Below are positions 2,018 through 64,000 of a stretch of DNA of 64,000 nucleotides, piece by piece. The DNA comes from Blastocladiella emersonii ATCC 22665 (Eukaryota > Fungi > Blastocladiomycota). The translations under genes and the position numbers were made by a program. Position 1 is the first letter of the stretch. Each line of letters begins with the position of its first letter. The stretch spans positions 310,001 through 374,000 of the forward strand of contig JANHCV010000005.1 of NCBI GenBank assembly GCA_025594325.1, in the 5' to 3' direction. The notes below the pieces were generated by a model that worked only from the letters and a program-made list of their open reading frames with translations, ran no database searches and had not been told where the DNA came from.

Positions 2018-4597
2018 TTACTTGGACGAGGCGGTCGAGGACGACGATGCGGACTCGTCGACGATATCCTTGGGGTTGAGCTTCTTGGCGGCCGCCTCGT
2101 CGCCTGCCGCTGCGTCCGCGGCGGGCGCAGCGCTGGTCGCAGCGGACGCGGCGGGCTTGGCCTCGACGACCACGCCGTGGCCCTCGGCGGCCATCTCCTC
2201 GACGGCGCGCGCGAGCTCGAGCAGCTCGTGCAGGGCAATGAGGCCGTCGCCGTCGACGTCGAGCTTGCGGACAATGGCCTTGATGTCCTGGTCGTTGTTG
2301 GGGCGCGACTTGATGACGCGCAGGGCGGCCTCGAGGTCGTCGGCCGTGATCTGGCCGCGCTCGTTGGCCTGGATCAGCGGCAGCTTGTTGGTGGACGCGG
2401 CGAGCTCCGTGTCGTACTGCTCGAGCTCGGCCTGGATCTTGGACAGGAGCTTCTCGACCTGCGAGTCGAGGCGCGTCGTCGCCTTGGCCGCGGCCTTGGC
2501 GGCGGCCACGGCCGCGGGGTCCTCCTCGACGGCGGGCGCCGTGGGCGTCGTAGGGGTAGCGGTCAGTTCCGCCGACGCGGCGGCAGCAGCAGCGGTCGCG
2601 GTGGCCTCGGCGGCGGCGGCCTTCTTCTCCTTCTCCTTCTCGCCAGCGGCGCGGCCGCCCTTGAGCGACTCGAGCTCGACGCGCTCCGTGTCGACGGCCG
2701 ACTTGGACACGAGCACCTTGATGGCCTCGGACAGCTCCTTGACCTGCTCGGCGGACATCTTGACGTCCTTGACGGGCTCCTCGGGCGCGGGGGCCGCGGC
2801 AGCCGCGGCCTCCGTAGCGGGAGCGGCCGCGACGGGCTCGGCGGCAGCAGCGACGGGCGTCGGTTCCGCGGCCGCAGCCGCCTCAGCGACGGCAGCCGTG
2901 ACGGCAGCGTGCACGGCCTCGGCCTGGGCGACGGCAGCCGCGGCAGCAGCCGCAGCAGCGGCGGCAGCGGCCTCGGCCTCCTTCTGCTCCTTGACCTTGC
3001 GGGCCTCCTCGGCGGCCTGGGCCTCCTGCTGCAGCTCGGCGGCGATGATCTCCTCCTGCTGCTTGAGCGCCTCGAGCTTCTTCTTGTACGACGACTTGCC
3101 GGCGTCGGCGAGCTTGAGCTCGGCCTCGTTGATCTAGTTTGCGTGGGGCGGGATCCAGGGTTAGCCGAGCCGGATCGTGGGCGGTGTGAGAAAGCGTACG
3201 AGGTTGGAGGGCAGCGACTGGAGCGTAGCCTGGAGGGCCTCGGCGGTGGTGGGCGGGAGCTCGGCGGGGACGGGCTCGGCGGCGGGTGCCGCGGCCGCAG
3301 CAGCTGCAGCCGCCGCGGGGGCAGCCTCGGCGGCGGGCGTGGTCGGAGCGGGCGCGGGGGCAGCGGGCTTGGCGACGTGCATGGGCTGGTCCGAGATGAT
3401 GAAGGCGCGCGAGAGGATGAGGAGGGCCGAGGGGATCTTGTGGATGAGGTGGAGGTCGAGCCACTGCTGGAGGTCGTAGCGGAGGCGGGCGGGGCTGACG
3501 CCGATGGTCTTGATGCCGCGGTCGGCGGCGGCCTTCTGGAGCTCCTGGACCGAGAGCGAGTCGACGCCCTCAAAATAGATCATCTGGTCGTCGGTGTGGA
3601 GCTGGCGCATGCGCGAGCGGACCTGGAAGCGGAGGAAGGCGTCGGTGCCGAAAGCGTTGATGCCCATGTACTTGCACATGGAGACGAGCTGCGGGCGCGA
3701 CAGGTTCTCGAGGGTGAGCTCGTTCTCGAACTGCTGGGCGACCTTGATGAGGTCGGCGGTCTCGGCGGGCTCGCCCGTGGTGCGGATCTTGCGGAAGAAG
3801 GAGGTGAACTCCTGGGCGGCGGTGGCGGGGGTCTTGCCGGGGGCGGGGGCCGCGGTGGCGGCCATGTCGTCGACCGTCTCCTGGAGGAACTTTGCGAGCT
3901 CGAGGCGCATCTTGAGCATCTTCTTCTTCTTCTCCTCCTGGTCAAACGATTTCTCGAAGGTGGAGGGGAGCATGTTGGGGAAGACCTTGAGCAGGACGGG
4001 CAGGGCGAGCTCGGCGAACGGGATGGCGACGAGGACGAGGAAGGGCACGAGGCGGAACATGTCCGAGACGGTGCGCTTGAGCTGGCGCCACTCGCGGCGC
4101 GACAGCTTGTTGCCGCGCAGCAGCTTGAGGACGTAGCGCGACGACAGCTTGAACTCGTAGGCGAGCAGCTTGCTGCCCTCCTTGTAGTGCTGCAGCTCCT
4201 CCTTGATGTGCGGCCACGTCTCCTCGCGCAGCTTCTGCATCAGCGGCTTCTTGGCGACGACGGGCGCGGGCGTCGCGGGCGTCGCGGGCGTCGTGGCCGT
4301 TGGTGGCTCGGGCTTGGGCGGCTCCGAGGCGGCGAAGCGGGACGGCGACGTGGAGAAGGCGCGCAGGTGCGGTCCGGAGGCGGCCGCGGACGCGGACACG
4401 CGGTAGCGCAGCAGGGCGGCAGCAGCGAGCTCCGTCGTAGATCCCGCGGGCGCCGCGGCGGCGCGAGCGCGCATGGTGGCGGCCAGCGACGAGGCGGCGC
4501 GCACGTGGTGGTTGTGGTGCGCGAGCGCGGTCGGGCGCGCGGCGGCGGCCAGGGCGGCGGGGTTGCTCGCGGCGGTCAAGCGGCGCAGGGCGAGCAT
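2018..4597 (-). CDS. LETM1: LETM1/MDM38 mitochondrial inner-membrane protein; exons 3200-4597 and 2018-3133
   Basis: Mitochondrial-type presequence. LETM1 motifs ELQHYKEGSKLL, LSRREWRQLKRTVSDMFRLVPF, LPVLLKVFPNMLPSTF and LENLSRPQLVSMC. A 66-nt GT-AG intron (3134-3199) restores the frame. C-terminal EF-hand-like DVDGDGLIALHE. Confidence 0.95.
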
Positions 4598-60762: not shown

Positions 60763-62582
60763 TTACCCCGCAGCGAAGAACGCCTGCTCGACCGCGCCCC
60801 CGTGCGCCTCGGCGTCAAACAACAGCACCACGCCCTTCTCACGCACCAGCCGCGCCGCGACCTCGCCGCACTCGCCGCGGATCATGCGCGCGACAATCGC
60901 CGCCCTCGCCGTCTGCACCTCGTCGTCGACAGGCATCGCGACGCCCGCCGCGTGCGCGACCGCCGCCACCACCTTGCGGAACAGCGTCGCCGTCTTGCCC
61001 TCGATCACCGCCGCGAGCGTCGCCTCGGCCGCCGCGCGCTCGCCCGCGTCCGCGACCTGCTCGGCCAGCGGGCCCGCGATCTTGGGACCGACGACGCGCA
61101 GCAGGTGCCGCTCCAGCATTTTGGTGAGTTTGCGCGGCACACCGTGGTCCGCCAGCTTCGCCAGCCCGTCGTCCATGTACACCGCGAGCGCGGCCGTCCA
61201 CTCGAGCACCGCGCGCGCCGGGTCGCCGCGGTGCACGACGGCTTCATCGACGGCGGACTGGACCCGCGCCACGACGTCCCCGAGCACCACCTCGCGGAAC
61301 GCGCCGGGGACGTGGCCCGCGAGGTGCCGCGCCACGTCCGCGCGCGAGACCTCCGTCGACTCGCCCGCAGGCCGCGCCAGGACCGCGGCGACGACGGGCG
61401 CCGTTGCCCGCGCGATACATGCCGCCGTCACGCGGTCGCGCCGCGCCAGCTTCGTCTTGGCCACCAGCATTGGGGTCTCGGAGGTCGGCCCGAACGCACG
61501 CGTCAGGAACGCCGCGGCGTCTGCCGGGTCCGCGAGCGCGGGCCACGCGCTGCCGCCCGCTGCATCCATCACGTCTACTACCAGCTCGACGTCCGCGAGC
61601 CCCGCGATCGCGTCGCGCAGGTACCGCGCGTGCGGCGGGGACAAGAGCACGGTGTCGAGGTGCCACGGCGCGTCGGGCCCTGTCGCGGGTAGCCACGGGA
61701 GAGATTTCGCGGTGGAGAGCGGCAGGTAGCCCGCCGACGCGTACGTGTCGCGCACCTGCGCCGACGCCCGCTCCTCGTACACGGTCGGGACGAAGGTGCC
61801 GCCCTGCACGCGGCCGGCGAGCGCGCCGCTTGAGGTGAGCTCGCGCAGCGTCGACTGTAGCAGGCCCGTGGGGCATGCGAGGTCGCCGAGCGCGGCGCGG
61901 ATCGTTATTGGGCTACGGGAGGGTGGGTCGGAGTGAGCTCCCCGCTCGCGCTCGGATCAGTAGGTGGAGCATACCGGTCGGTCGCCAGACTCGCCGCCAG
62001 CCGGTCGCGGACCTGCGTGCGGAACGCGTCCGTGTAGAAGGTGTTGTTGTCGATGTCGTCGCGGATCGCCACCGCCGGCGCGGGTGCGGCCGCGGCCAGC
62101 GAGGAAGACGACGACGCTGCTGACGCCAACTCGCCAGCCGCGCGCTGCTTCTCGAGGACCTGGTACACGAGCGCGGTCGCGATCTTGCCGACCACGGCCG
62201 CGAGCGCGTCGGCCGTCGCGACGCCGCGCGCCGCGATCGCCACAGCCAAATCAGTCTCGAGCTTGGCGTAACCCGCGCGCGAGAACAGGTACGTGTCGAG
62301 GAGGAACACGGCGCCATCGTCGTCTTCGTCAAGCAGCGTCTCGACCACGGCGTCGCAGTCCTGCTGCGACAGCTGCAGCGTCGGCGCGAGCAGGTGGAAC
62401 GGCAGGTAGCCCTTGAGCTCGACCTCGGAACGGAGTTTGGAGACGAGGTGCGCGTGCGTCGCCAGGTGCCCGTCCAGCGTGTGGAACGACGGCGGCAGCT
62501 CGGCCTGCGCTAGCAGTAGGTCCAGCAGCGCGGTGAACTGGCCCGGCGCGAGCGGCGGCGTGGGGGTCGTGGTTGATGACAT
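60763..62582 (-). CDS. UFL1: E3 UFM1-protein ligase 1 homolog; intron 61913-61974
   Basis: HTLDGHLAT..L.SEVELKG, FYTDAF, RPITI..L...LLQSTLRELTSSGALAGRVQGGTFVPTVY....QVRDTYASAGYL parallel UFL1 (HTLDGKEY, IFTEAF, FVPDIY, NGYL). Confidence 0.75.
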
Positions 62583-63183
62583 GGTTGCTCGATGCGTTGC
62601 GATGAGTATAGATGCGTGGCGGAGCGACAAGGGGGGCGGAGCAGGGAGCGAAGCGGGGAGATCGGCAGCCGAGCGAGGGAGGGCGCACGCCACCCTGCAC
62701 GCCACCCGCACGTGGCGCTGAGCGACACGCCCGGCGCGCGCATGTCTCGCACCGCGCCGGAGACGCCCCCCTGCCGCCTGCGCGTGACGCACGGTGCGTT
62801 GGCGCGGCCGCCGTGATGGGTGGGAACGCGGCCCTCGTGCCCCGCGCGCCGCACTGGCTGGCGTGGGACCGCCGCGATGGGAGACGCAGGTCCCTCCCTC
62901 GTGGCCGCGCGCGCAACCACACGTTGGCGCCGCGGCGACTCGCCCGCGCGCAACCTTTGCTGGCCATCCCGCCACCGTGCACGCAAGGCAGCAAGCTCGG
63001 TGTCTGCGCAGGACGGCGAGCGGGCCCGGCCCTATAAAAACCCGCCGCGCCGCCCCCGCACCCTCGCTCTCTCGCCTGCTCCTCACCCTCTGCATCTCGT
63101 TGGACGACAAGCCGGCCTTGCTCTCCTCCTCTAGCACCCATCCTTGCGACCTCCTCCAAACACCCACATTGCTCCCCTTCACC

Positions 63184-64000
63184 ATGTCGCCCTCGACCGC
63201 CTCCCTCGCCACCCTCGTCGTCGCGACGCTCGCCATCATCTCGGCCATCACGCCCGCGGCCTCGGCCCACTTCACGCTCACGGGCTCGCGCGAGCAGTCC
63301 ATGTGGCAGTCGAACCTCAAGTACTACCCGATCGCTGGTACGCGCGCTCTCTTTCTCGCGTGTGTGTGCGGGCGCGCGCGCTCGCGCGGGCCGCCGCTGT
63401 GATCGCGACTCTGATCTCACACCCACGACGCGCCCCCGCTCCCCTCCCGATCCCCGCAGGCAGCCCGAACGCGCGGCCCATCACCGACTGCCTGCAGGTG
63501 CCGTCCAAGACGCCGATCCCCGTGACGCCCGGGTCGACGCGCACCGAGGCGTACGACGTCGGCAACCACGCGACGCACGTGGGCGTGTGCAAGGGCGCCA
63601 TCATCGACGCCAAGACGGGCTCGACGGTCGCGACGCTGCCCGACGTGCTCAACTGCGTCGCCAACTCGCAGGCCTACTCGTGGACCGTGCCCAACATCAA
63701 CTGCCCCGCCTGCGTCCTCAAGGTGTCGGTGACGGCCGTCCACCTCGGCCCCGACCACGCCGAGAACTACGACTCGTGCCTCGACATCAGCATCGCCGGC
63801 GGCTCGGGCTCGGGCTCGGGCGGCAGCAACTCGGGCTACCCGAACGGCGGCAAGGGCAGCCGCCGCGTCACGGACCAGCTGCCCTCGGTCCAGGTCCCCG
63901 CCAACATCCCGACGGCCGCGCCCGCGATCCCCGCCGTCCCCGTCCCCGCGGCGCCCGCTGTCCCCGTCGTCCCGGTCCCCGTCAAGGCGCCCGAGCAGCG
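63184..64000 (+). CDS. Secreted LPMO-like protein with a predicted mature N-terminal His (3' partial); intron 63338-63459
   Basis: Signal peptide ending ASA|H, second His in NHATHVGVC, Cys pairs, ENYDSCLDISI, then a Gly/Ser linker and Pro/Val/Ala stalk. Confidence 0.65.

Follow-up and report, generated by a model that had tools for sequence, protein, structure and literature searches.

Among the LPMO families, AA11 and AA13 to AA17 each brought new substrates or biological roles, and AA10 enzymes carry an S/T-R motif shortly after His1. LPMO-like proteins that possess an intact histidine brace yet show no polysaccharide activity exist as well, X325 being one example, and the X325/Bim1 proteins have been proposed to acquire or buffer copper at the cell surface. 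AA18 is a different, bacterial copper enzyme. In AfAA11A, His71 acts as the brace histidine and Ala69 and Tyr133 are the axial residues, and in bacterial chitin-active AA10s the axial position is a Phe (PMC8668981). AA16 illustrates how an unassigned family becomes a new auxiliary-activity family upon demonstrated activity (PMC6420742). AA9 and AA11 have been reported in the literature from some zoosporic fungi; papers citing Santos et al. 2025 name AA18 among the LPMO families and say no more of it. The lineage of the present gene has received little study, and our literature search returned no description of the protein family treated here, nor of any LPMO from Blastocladiomycota.

The gene analysed here lies at the end of a 64,000-nucleotide stretch of the Blastocladiella emersonii assembly GCA_025594325.1 (the window), where the initial annotation had proposed a copper-dependent LPMO with a histidine brace. 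It consists of two exons and encodes a protein of 253 amino acids, P0001 (Table 1). When joined and translated, both exons yield residues 1–231 of the database protein; the splice 63337/63460 is identical in the database gene model, and homology continues unbroken over this junction. The GC3 of the coding sequence amounts to 0.99 as compared to a GC content of 0.74 in the intron. Upstream of the start codon, a TATA-like box suggests a promoter element, as far as this can be judged from the letters of the DNA. A promoter and terminator scan of the locus remained empty, the scan relying on bacterial models that are unsuited to a eukaryotic host, and tblastn retrieved no paralogue of the LPMO-like gene within the 64-kb window.

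Table 1. Features of the P0001 gene; positions refer to the window and residue numbers of the site residues to the mature protein.
Feature	Position	Strand	Description
TATA-like box	63033..63040	+	TATAAAAA; ATG 151 nt downstream; read off the sequence
Exon 1	63184..63337	+	154 nt; ATG at 63184; signal peptide and 23 mature residues; ends in phase 1
Signal peptide	63184..63267	+	28 residues, MSPSTASLATLVVATLAIISAITPAASA, ending A-A-S-A; hydrophobic core, small residues at -3/-1
His1 codon CAC	63268..63270	+	predicted mature N-terminal residue, first brace ligand
Intron	63338..63459	+	122 nt, GT..AG (GTACGC...CCGCAG); interrupts the codon following residue 51
Exon 2	63460..64000	+	continues past the window; CDS end including stop at L001 3884, +67 nt
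Ala61-Thr-His63	63570..63578	+	Ala 63570-63572, His 63576-63578; candidate second brace His and distal axial Ala
His118	63741..63743	+	candidate second-sphere His; aligns with His157 of MtPMO9E
Glu125-Asn-Tyr127	63762..63770	+	Glu 63762-63764, Tyr 63768-63770; N/Q/E-x-F/Y motif, candidate second-sphere Glu and axial Tyr
Gly/Ser linker and Pro/Ala/Val-rich tail	63801..64000 and beyond the window	+	no secondary structure after residue 165; pLDDT 48-75

The initial annotation had placed a histidine directly behind a predicted signal cleavage site ASA|H. This arrangement is present in the gene as described, and it recurs throughout the family: a His follows the signal peptide at position +1 in 40 of 41 alignable homologues, position -1 is occupied by A, G, S, C or T in 38 of 39, and the (-3,-1) layout of a cleavage site is found family-wide. 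Judging from the aligned sequences, a His immediately after the signal peptide appears across the family far beyond what chance would produce. Residues 8–20 of P0001 form a low-confidence helix in the full-length structure model, which corresponds to the signal peptide. The signal peptide is predicted to be cleaved at ASA|H, which would expose His1 of the mature protein. The latter comprises a domain of 137 amino acids with six cysteines followed by a disordered tail rich first in Gly/Ser and then in Pro/Ala/Val. A search of this tail for a carbohydrate-binding module found none, and the C-terminus reads SAAAAAAVVTAEH followed by the stop codon and thus has no hydrophobic GPI-type end. The Pfam model DUF6426 touches the Gly/Ser/Pro tail with an E-value of 0.005 and 16.8 bits, below its cut-off of 25, and this match was discarded as compositional.

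An exhaustive search with the single sequence of P0001 recovered about 45 short homologues with E-values from 7e-52 to about 4e-6. Those that carry an organism name belong exclusively to Blastocladiomycota or to the sanchytrid Amoeboradix; nearly all begin with the layout signal peptide|HFTL, and the six cysteines are conserved. About 55 of the 100 matches of this search are long proteins of about 350–4,350 amino acids, which cover only residues of about 103–155 in many stretches. Since the three of them that we inspected turned out to carry Ig-like repeats (Big_3, Reelin subrepeat B and CHB_HEX_C), we treated the long matches as noise. In a word-indexed protein search, exon 2 of P0001 matched itself alone, which is due to the index, as relatives do exist. 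At the profile level, relatives occur in chytrids and in Pythium, which form a sister clade with an HG start; hhalign connects the family to the Pythium relative with a probability of 99.1 % and an E-value of 1.3e-18. Some of these profile-level relatives carry appended modules, namely CBM1 in Borealophlyctis and CBM18 in Gaertneriomyces. Within the family, one third of the members possess a small cysteine-containing tail module that weakly resembles the chitin-binding CBM19 and CBM14, the similarity remaining below the cut-off (CBM_19 in 4 of 16, best E 1e-3; CBM_14 in 1 of 16).

The residues expected at a copper site are conserved. The conserved set comprises H1, R8, C34, A61, H63, G65, C67, C89, C105, C108, H118, E125, Y/F127, C130 and D132, in which H1, A61, H63, H118, E125 and Y127 are numbered according to the mature protein. 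The second brace histidine had been proposed to lie in the motif NHATHVGVC; this motif is present, encoded in exon 2, and its H63 is retained in 39 of 42 family members and aligns to His71 of AfAA11A. The accompanying comparison with the H-x-G-x-x-C pattern of AA11 enzymes stood only in part: the resemblance exists, but the exact spacing does not, as the actual motif is H-x-G-x-C and the HMMER alignment bridges the difference by a gap of one residue. H118 is found in 38 of 40 members. Position 125 is a Glu in 39 of 41 members and a Gln in the other two, and position 127 is a Tyr in 36 and a Phe in five. The motif ENYDSCLDISI (63762–63794), to which the initial annotation had ascribed the strand bearing the axial aromatic residue, was borne out by this conservation and by the alignment of Glu125 and Tyr127 with Glu131 and Tyr133 of AfAA11A; altogether, HMMER places A61, H63, E125 and Y127 of P0001 on Ala69, His71, Glu131 and Tyr133 of that enzyme. 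A61 and H63 are invariant in an alignment of 12 sequences from blastoclads, chytrids and Pythium, and five site residues are conserved jointly across blastoclads, chytrids and one oomycete. H63 and H118 have been lost in part of the family (P0034, P0044 and P0047).

The fold points in the same direction. An AlphaFold model, suggested at the outset as a check of the brace, was obtained for the domain with high confidence (pLDDT 95.5, pTM 0.89) and adopts an LPMO fold. The best 50 Foldseek matches in the PDB are all LPMOs (lowest E 1.1e-5), and among 48,161 representative chains compared by VIA-align the best 24 are all LPMOs or LPMO-like proteins with Z-scores of 8.0–12.4, below which other sandwich folds tail off gradually at Z 6–7.7. 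By family, the Z-scores are 12.4 for AA15, 11.9 for AA16, 10.7 for AA11, 10.5 for AA10, 10.4 for AA13 and 10.2 for AA9. According to the alignment ranges, residue 1 of the model is superposed on the mature residue 1 of solved LPMOs. A fold search of the ESM Atlas gave TM-scores by query of 0.66–0.73 and clusters mostly with LPMO_10 or AA9, and a feature search of the same resource gave LPMO_10 and BIM1-like clusters.

The sequence had initially been described as not clearly assignable to any CAZy AA family, and our comparisons agree with this assessment. The Pfam scan of P0001 yielded no LPMO model at its threshold. Exon 2 reaches 12.6 bits against the AA9 model PF03443, whose cut-off is 27.8, and the full protein remains unmatched; sub-threshold AA9 matches occur in 16 of 42 family members with a best E-value of 3.2e-5. 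P0001 is matched neither by the AA10 model PF03067 (LPMO_10), against which P0105, the relative from Pythium, reaches 19.9 bits with a cut-off of 23, nor by PF20238 of the X325/BIM1-like proteins. When the family profile was run against the PDB chains, 16 of 16 matches were LPMOs, each of them individually non-significant with an E-value of at least 0.046. For AA11, the profile reaches AfAA11A with a non-significant E-value of 0.062 and leaves AoAA11 unmatched, so that the likeness is confined to the level of motifs; AA15 (5MSZ, E 0.094) and AA16 (7ZE9, E 0.08) are likewise non-significant. No profile match at E <= 10 was obtained to AA13 (4OPB), AA14 (5NO7) or any chain attributable to AA17, and the Pythium relative has no significant sequence match to AA15 or AA16 chains. 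The matches listed by the exhaustive search with P0001 include no recognisable named LPMO at E <= 1e-3, and those sampled outside the family are Ig-repeat proteins. The Pfam model CV_2116-like (E 0.21) and the NCBIfam model sce4755_fam (14.9 bits against 75) were set aside, both being far under their cut-offs. Since no Pfam model passes its threshold and the profile E-values are at least 0.046, we regard P0001 as a member of the LPMO superfamily outside the named families that were tested by Pfam models and by the family profile against solved chains, and as a credible candidate for a new family.

The conserved site residues, the fold and the alignment to described copper-site residues all support the original proposal of a His-brace LPMO candidate. 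We regard it as very likely that P0001 is a His-brace protein with an LPMO fold, and the fuller description, a secreted mono-copper protein of this type outside the named families tested, is in our estimation probable. That P0001 is in addition a catalytically active LPMO we consider rather likely. In such an enzyme, the amino group and the side chain of the predicted mature His1 would hold one copper ion together with His63, Tyr127 would lie beneath the copper with Ala61 on the opposite axial side, and Glu125 and His118 would be part of the second sphere. The reduced copper may then react with H2O2 or O2 and oxidize a C-H bond beside the glycosidic linkage of a crystalline polysaccharide. Chitin, either of the fungus' own wall or of chitinous debris, is our tentative suggestion for the most likely substrate, because of the Ala/Glu/Tyr site and because of the weakly CBM19/CBM14-like module in one third of the family. 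Such an Ala/Glu/Tyr site is known from descriptions of AA10 and AA11 enzymes that act on chitin.

It is possible, if not the outcome we would expect first, that the HFTL-starting clade from Blastocladiomycota and Sanchytriomycota and the HG-starting sister clade of chytrids and oomycetes together represent a new AA family of active LPMOs, which would combine a domain of about 137 residues, among the smallest known, with an Ala/Glu/Tyr site and an AA9-type second-sphere His. Such enzymes might remodel the chitin of the blastoclads' own walls during the zoospore-to-sporangium cycle or might be used by the parasites Coelomomyces, Sorochytrium and Paraphysoderma in the attack on host cuticles or walls. 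The family might otherwise represent a strongly diverged branch of one of the established CAZy families, with AA11 as the first candidate and AA15 or AA16 as the next. AfAA11A is indeed a top PDB sequence match of both sub-clades (E 0.062 and 0.0046), it has the A-x-H...G.C and E-x-Y-x-x-C-x-D motifs in common with the P0001 family, and the structural comparisons rank AA15 and AA16 highest. However, these E-values are rated non-significant, the identity in the structural alignments is 14–19 %, and the model is about equidistant from AA15, AA16, AA11, AA10, AA13 and AA9 (Z 10.2–12.4). With no Pfam LPMO model past its cut-off and no named LPMO at E <= 1e-3 in the exhaustive search, we judge membership in an existing family to be improbable.

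P0001 might also bind copper without cleaving polysaccharides and rather acquire or buffer copper at the surface of the cell, take part in redox signalling, or associate with the wall via its Pro-rich tail. LaX325 (6IBH) is found among the structural matches (Z 8.0), BIM1-like clusters appear beside LPMO_10 in the feature search, P0001 itself lacks a CBM, and the loss of H63 and H118 in P0034, P0044 and P0047 indicates that non-catalytic derivatives arise. The second-sphere Glu-x-Tyr and His are tied to oxidant activation in characterised LPMOs, however, and the family keeps Glu-x-Tyr and His118 far more strictly than copper binding alone would require. No LPMO-type structural match is furthermore weaker than X325, P0001 has neither a BIM1-like Pfam match nor a GPI-type C-terminus, and the CBM1, CBM18 or CBM19-like modules of its relatives argue for an action on polysaccharides. 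We consider a non-cleaving copper binder unlikely, albeit the strongest of the competing explanations. Far less probable is a secreted beta-sandwich protein of the wall or of adhesion that binds no metal and whose N-terminal His and motifs are coincidental or vestigial. The LPMO core is itself built as an Ig/FnIII-like sandwich, numerous proteins with Ig repeats align to one hairpin of 30 residues in the domain, unrelated sandwich folds follow in a gradual run at Z 6–7.7, and P0001 ends in a long Pro-rich tail, all of which would suit such a protein. It is contradicted by the joint conservation of five site residues in blastoclads, chytrids and an oomycete, by the residue-for-residue alignment with described copper-site residues, and by the 24 consecutive LPMO-type matches that precede the first other fold.

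New LPMO families extend the known chemistry of LPMOs, and a 14.5-kDa domain with the full set of first- and second-sphere residues would be a handy scaffold for mechanistic and spectroscopic work. The profile-level ties between blastoclad, chytrid and oomycete proteins bear on the early divergence of LPMO families in fungi and fungus-like protists. Should the proteins prove inactive, they would constitute another lineage of LPMO-like copper-binding proteins.

Compared with the described systems individually, P0001 shares with LaX325 of the X325/BIM1-like proteins an LPMO-like fold, the N-terminal His and its origin as a secreted fungal protein, but differs in retaining the second-sphere Glu-x-Tyr set, in lacking a GPI-type end and in its low structural similarity, the weakest of LPMO type. 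It resembles the compact AA10s JdLPMO10A (5AA7, 142 residues) and CBP21 (2BEM) in minimal size and fold (Z 10.1–10.6), in the A-x-H motif and, by alignment, in an S/T-R motif soon after His1, whereas identity is only 7–10 % and the axial residue of the P0001 family is a Tyr. To the AA9 enzymes MtPMO9E and TaAA9A it is related by the C-terminal strands A-x-H...(Q/E)-x-Y-x-x-C (Z 9.5–10.5), with H118, E125 and Y127 falling on His157, Gln166 and Tyr168 of MtPMO9E; in contrast to AA9, however, the family has Glu in place of Gln together with an Ala of AA10/AA11 type, and the catalytic domains of AA9 exceed the P0001 domain by about 90 residues. The AA16 chain 7ZE9, whose PDB entry is titled 'AA16 LPMO-like protein', superposes over 125 residues (Z 11.9, rmsd 3.1), its GHHPG aligning through the second His with H63 of P0001 and its QSYESCVD with Y127-x-x-C-x-D, so that E125 and Y127 fall on Gln and Tyr, but the AA16 motif reads Q-[TN]-Y (PMC6420742) where the P0001 family has E-x-Y. 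Structurally, the best match is the AA15 enzyme TdAA15A (5MSZ), with 133 of 142 residues superposed at Z 12.4 and an rmsd of 3.1. AA11 (AfAA11A, 7P3U; AoAA11, 4MAH/4MAI) differs from P0001 in that identity is 14–18 %, the P0001 domain is about 50–60 residues shorter, the P0001 family begins with HFTLxGSRE, and its conserved His118 has no counterpart in the alignment with AfAA11A. Nevertheless, both are secreted fungal proteins, with a predicted His1 in P0001, and share the fold (Z 10.2–10.7, rmsd 2.8–2.9), and AfAA11A has the same succession of A-x-H followed by G..C and of the strand E-x-Y-x-x-C-x-D-[IV].

The candidate lytic polysaccharide monooxygenase (LPMO) is encoded by a two-exon gene that runs off the end of the window, in GC-rich eukaryotic DNA (0.57–0.73 GC across the window). 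The exons were searched separately; a word-indexed protein search retrieved the 253-aa protein P0001, in which the splice is identical to the predicted one (...KYYPIA-G-SPNARP...), and a script comparison showed that the joined translation of exons 1 and 2 equals its first 231 residues. The coding sequence has a GC3 of 0.99 versus 0.74 GC for the intron. Since neither neighbouring gene is carbohydrate-related, the LPMO-like gene lies outside any CAZyme cluster.

Coordinates of the LPMO-like gene, its proposed copper-site codons and its surroundings (window positions unless L001, the locus record reaching past the window, is named)
Feature	Position	Strand	Remarks
UFM1 E3 ligase homologue (PF09743)	60763-62582	minus	neighbour gene
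TATAAAAA box	151 nt upstream of ATG		read from sequence
Exon 1	63184-63337	+	154 nt, opens with ATG at 63184
His1 codon	63268-63270		directly after ...PAASA
Intron	63338-63459	+	122 nt, GTACGC...CCGCAG
Exon 2	from 63460, off window end	+	stop codon 67 nt past window
Second His codon	63576-63578		in NHATHVGVC
Glu codon	63762-63764		in ENYDSCLDISI
Tyr codon	63768-63770		in ENYDSCLDISI
(CATT)n microsatellite, short	L001 ~4000-4025		~115-140 nt past stop codon, beyond window; presumed 3' UTR
FAD_binding_4 oxidoreductase (PF01565)	L001 4284-6299, just past window end	minus	downstream neighbour

A Pfam scan of both exons and of P0001 gave no model reaching its cut-off. The family is described from an exhaustive phmmer comparison with 1.84 billion representative proteins, which gave 100 matches with E values of 1e-3 or lower. 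Some 45 of them are short (148–383 aa) and align along the full length of the domain, their E values ranging from 7e-52 to about 4e-6. The remaining matches, all long proteins, were rejected as noise, since each matches only one β-hairpin of about 30 residues (residues ~103–155), many times over; Big_3, Reelin subrepeat B and CHB_HEX_C domains were identified in the three that were scanned, all of them Ig-like repeat proteins. Such Ig-like-repeat matches (P0032, P0035, P0036 and about 50 others) reached E values down to 8e-19 with the single-sequence query by summing hairpin matches, which calls for caution in automated homology calls on LPMO-like domains.

The initial annotation had placed a histidine at mature position 1 by a predicted ASA|H cleavage, and this residue does directly follow ...PAASA. 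A histidine stands right after the N-terminal hydrophobic segment in 40 of 41 alignable short homologues (alignment A1); position −1 is A, G, S, C or T in 38 of 39, and almost all carry a small or aliphatic residue at −3. Across the family these residues follow the von Heijne cleavage pattern, the strongest indication in this analysis that cleavage at the predicted site would expose His1. Conserved in the mature domain are H1, F2, S7, R8, P21, R29, C34, A61, H63, G65, C67, C89, C105, C108, A116, H118, E125, Y/F127, S129, C130 and D132, the six conserved cysteines suggesting three disulfides.

We compared the family profile with all PDB sequences. The 16 matches are LPMOs without exception, none of them individually significant (E 0.046 or weaker), and with the Pfam result this bears out the earlier view that the protein is not clearly assignable to an AA family. 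In the HMMER alignment to AfAA11A (7P3U), n-g-A-s-H-v-G-l-C of the family lies on S68-A69-T70-H71-G-G-G-S-C and p-E-y-Y-d-s-C-l-D-v on R-E131-L-Y133-M-N-C136-A-D138-V. The copper of AfAA11A is coordinated by His1 and His71, and Tyr133 and Ala69 occupy its two axial sites (PMC8668981). The two motifs proposed from the DNA are both present, ENYDSCLDISI as described and NHATHVGVC with its second histidine, but the latter had been likened to an H-x-G-x-x-C pattern and has H-x-G-x-C spacing, one residue shorter than in AfAA11A. In the AA16 protein 7ZE9, the second histidine of GHHPG falls under H63 and the tyrosine of QSYESCVD under Y127. His157, Gln166 and Tyr168 of MtPMO9E fall under H118, E125 and Y127; these positions were counted from the alignment and agree with the deposited variants called H157Q and Y168F. 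By these alignments, informative although not significant, the family carries an AA10/AA11-type set of His1, Ala61, His63, Glu125 and Tyr127 together with His118 as an AA9-like candidate for the second sphere.

An AlphaFold2 model of residues 29–170, built from the 39-sequence domain alignment A2, has a mean pLDDT of 95.5 and a pTM of 0.89, and its best 50 PDB matches in Foldseek are LPMOs throughout (AA9, AA16, AA11, AA10, AA15; E 1.1e-5 to 6e-4). VIA-align, which is independent of Foldseek, was run over 48,161 representative chains and gave only LPMO or LPMO-like proteins in its first 24 ranks, among them AA15 (5MSZ, Z 12.4, 133 residues aligned, rmsd 3.1), AA16 (7ZE9, Z 11.9), AA11 (7P3U and 4MAI, Z 10.7 and 10.2), AA10 (5WSZ, Z 10.5), AA13 (4OPB, Z 10.4), AA9 (5ACF, Z 10.2), fusolin (4YN2, Z 8.8), AA14 (5NO7, Z 8.2) and X325 (6IBH, Z 8.0). 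Residue 1 of the model lies on the first mature residue of solved enzymes, e.g. residue 28 of CBP21 and 35 of ScLPMO10C. An ESM Atlas fold search gave TM scores by query of 0.66–0.73 to clusters mostly carrying LPMO_10 or AA9, and a language-model feature search, taken as a lead only, points the same way. The features described in the initial annotation are confirmed, and the modelled fold and the conserved site residues support its reading as a candidate copper LPMO.

Family members with an organism name come solely from Blastocladiomycota (Allomyces javanicus, Blastocladiella britannica, B. emersonii, Paraphysoderma sedebokerense, Sorochytrium milnesiophthora and Coelomomyces lativittatus) or the sanchytrid Amoeboradix gromovi, the others from metagenomes or unlabelled assemblies. 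In the maximum-likelihood tree P0001 pairs with P0002 of A. javanicus (support 96/74). P0021, a second B. emersonii protein, falls in a different clade beside a B. britannica protein, hence two or more old paralogues exist in the B. emersonii genome. At least four members belong to Paraphysoderma; P0003 (KAI9136696.1) and P0014 (KAI9136701.1) of P. sedebokerense lie on one 67,635-bp contig with accessions five apart, which suggests local duplication. An environmental clade (P0034, P0044, P0047; support 100/98) retains its signal peptide and His1 but no longer has the second brace histidine or His118, and is probably a non-catalytic offshoot.

The tail of P0001 consists of a Gly/Ser linker and a Pro/Ala/Val-rich stretch, contains neither a CBM nor a GPI-type end, and in the full-length model (residues 166–253) is devoid of secondary structure at pLDDT 48–75. 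A small terminal module with two to four cysteines, C..DG..[FY]..C......APGT.C, occupies the C-terminal ~50 residues of 16 of 42 family members (alignment A4: P0004, P0007, P0008, P0009, P0011-P0013, P0019, P0022, P0029, P0031, P0033, P0034, P0044, P0046, P0047) and is missing from P0001. Its weak, sub-threshold matches to CBM_19 (4/16, best E 1e-3) and CBM_14 (1/16, E 0.005) are suggestive of chitin binding. Strongly basic Arg/Lys-rich C-termini after a Pro/Ser/Thr-rich linker occur in P0003, P0014-P0017, P0020, P0021, P0026 and P0043, the basic stretch of P0001 (...EQRKVVFPRRPS...) being mild by comparison; one may guess that these stretches bind polyanions or the wall, or serve as dibasic processing sites.

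A profile search with A2 also found distant relatives outside the clade of short homologues that nearly all start with HFTL: P0068 of Gaertneriomyces sp. (E 7e-28, no appended module), P0103 of Borealophlyctis nickersoniae (E 8e-25, C-terminal CBM1 at Pfam E 3e-11), P0104 of G. semiglobifer (E 1.6e-17, CBM18/hevein domains at E 1e-17), and P0105 and P0106 of Pythium oligandrum (E 2.8e-16 and 4.4e-15). P0105 scores 19.9 bits on LPMO_10, below the cut-off of 23, and hhalign of A2 against it gives a probability of 99.1 % (E 1.3e-18). After the signal peptide these five start with HG[YG][VM]..P..R, and A-x-H, G.C, H118, E-x-Y, C and D are invariant among them. They form a sister clade on a long, well-supported branch (95/99) of the tree and share an insertion of about 13 residues, LHPGPGNKGD.PIP. 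Their own profile finds no significant solved LPMO (best AfAA11A, E 0.0046), and the clade likewise goes unmatched at Pfam cut-offs. Both clades may constitute one unclassified LPMO family across fungi and oomycetes. Fusion to cellulose- or chitin-binding modules is expected of carbohydrate-active LPMOs.

In the proposed copper site, His1, His63, Tyr127 and Ala61 would complete the first sphere and Glu125 and His118 the second, and this set is far more strictly conserved than the remaining domain. Since the set is complete and strictly conserved and relatives carry CBMs, P0001 is most likely a secreted mono-copper LPMO, with ASA|H cleavage, copper binding and catalysis all predicted. A copper-binding LPMO-like protein devoid of catalysis is rather unlikely: X325-type proteins do exist, P0001 has no CBM and the environmental clade has degenerated to His1 without H63 and H118, but the second sphere is conserved and relatives bear CBMs. 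Membership as a very divergent AA11, AA15 or AA16 enzyme we consider improbable, because the motif resemblance, although real, is accompanied by no statistically significant similarity and the model lies about equally far from six families. Unrelated β-sandwiches appeared in VIA-align only below the LPMO-type matches (Z 7.7 or lower), and a non-metal β-sandwich protein seems very improbable.

For the predicted mono-copper LPMO, we favour chitin as the putative substrate because of the Ala/Glu/Tyr site, the CBM19/CBM18-like tails of relatives and the chitin in blastoclad walls and in the cuticles of the hosts of parasitic members, while cellulose is possible because a chytrid relative carries CBM1.

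Full-text searches on Blastocladiomycota or Allomyces LPMOs, new LPMO families and Pythium oligandrum LPMOs, mostly in papers outside subscription journals, yielded no description of the family, which we provisionally regard as undescribed. AA18 is probably a different, bacterial copper enzyme. The retrieved papers do no more than name it among the LPMO families, with reference to Santos et al. 2025. The gene is one among several unclassified LPMO-like lineages of early-diverging fungi and a credible, so far purely computational, candidate for a new family with a very compact domain; by its modelled fold and site residues, it most likely belongs to the LPMO superfamily, outside the named families tested.
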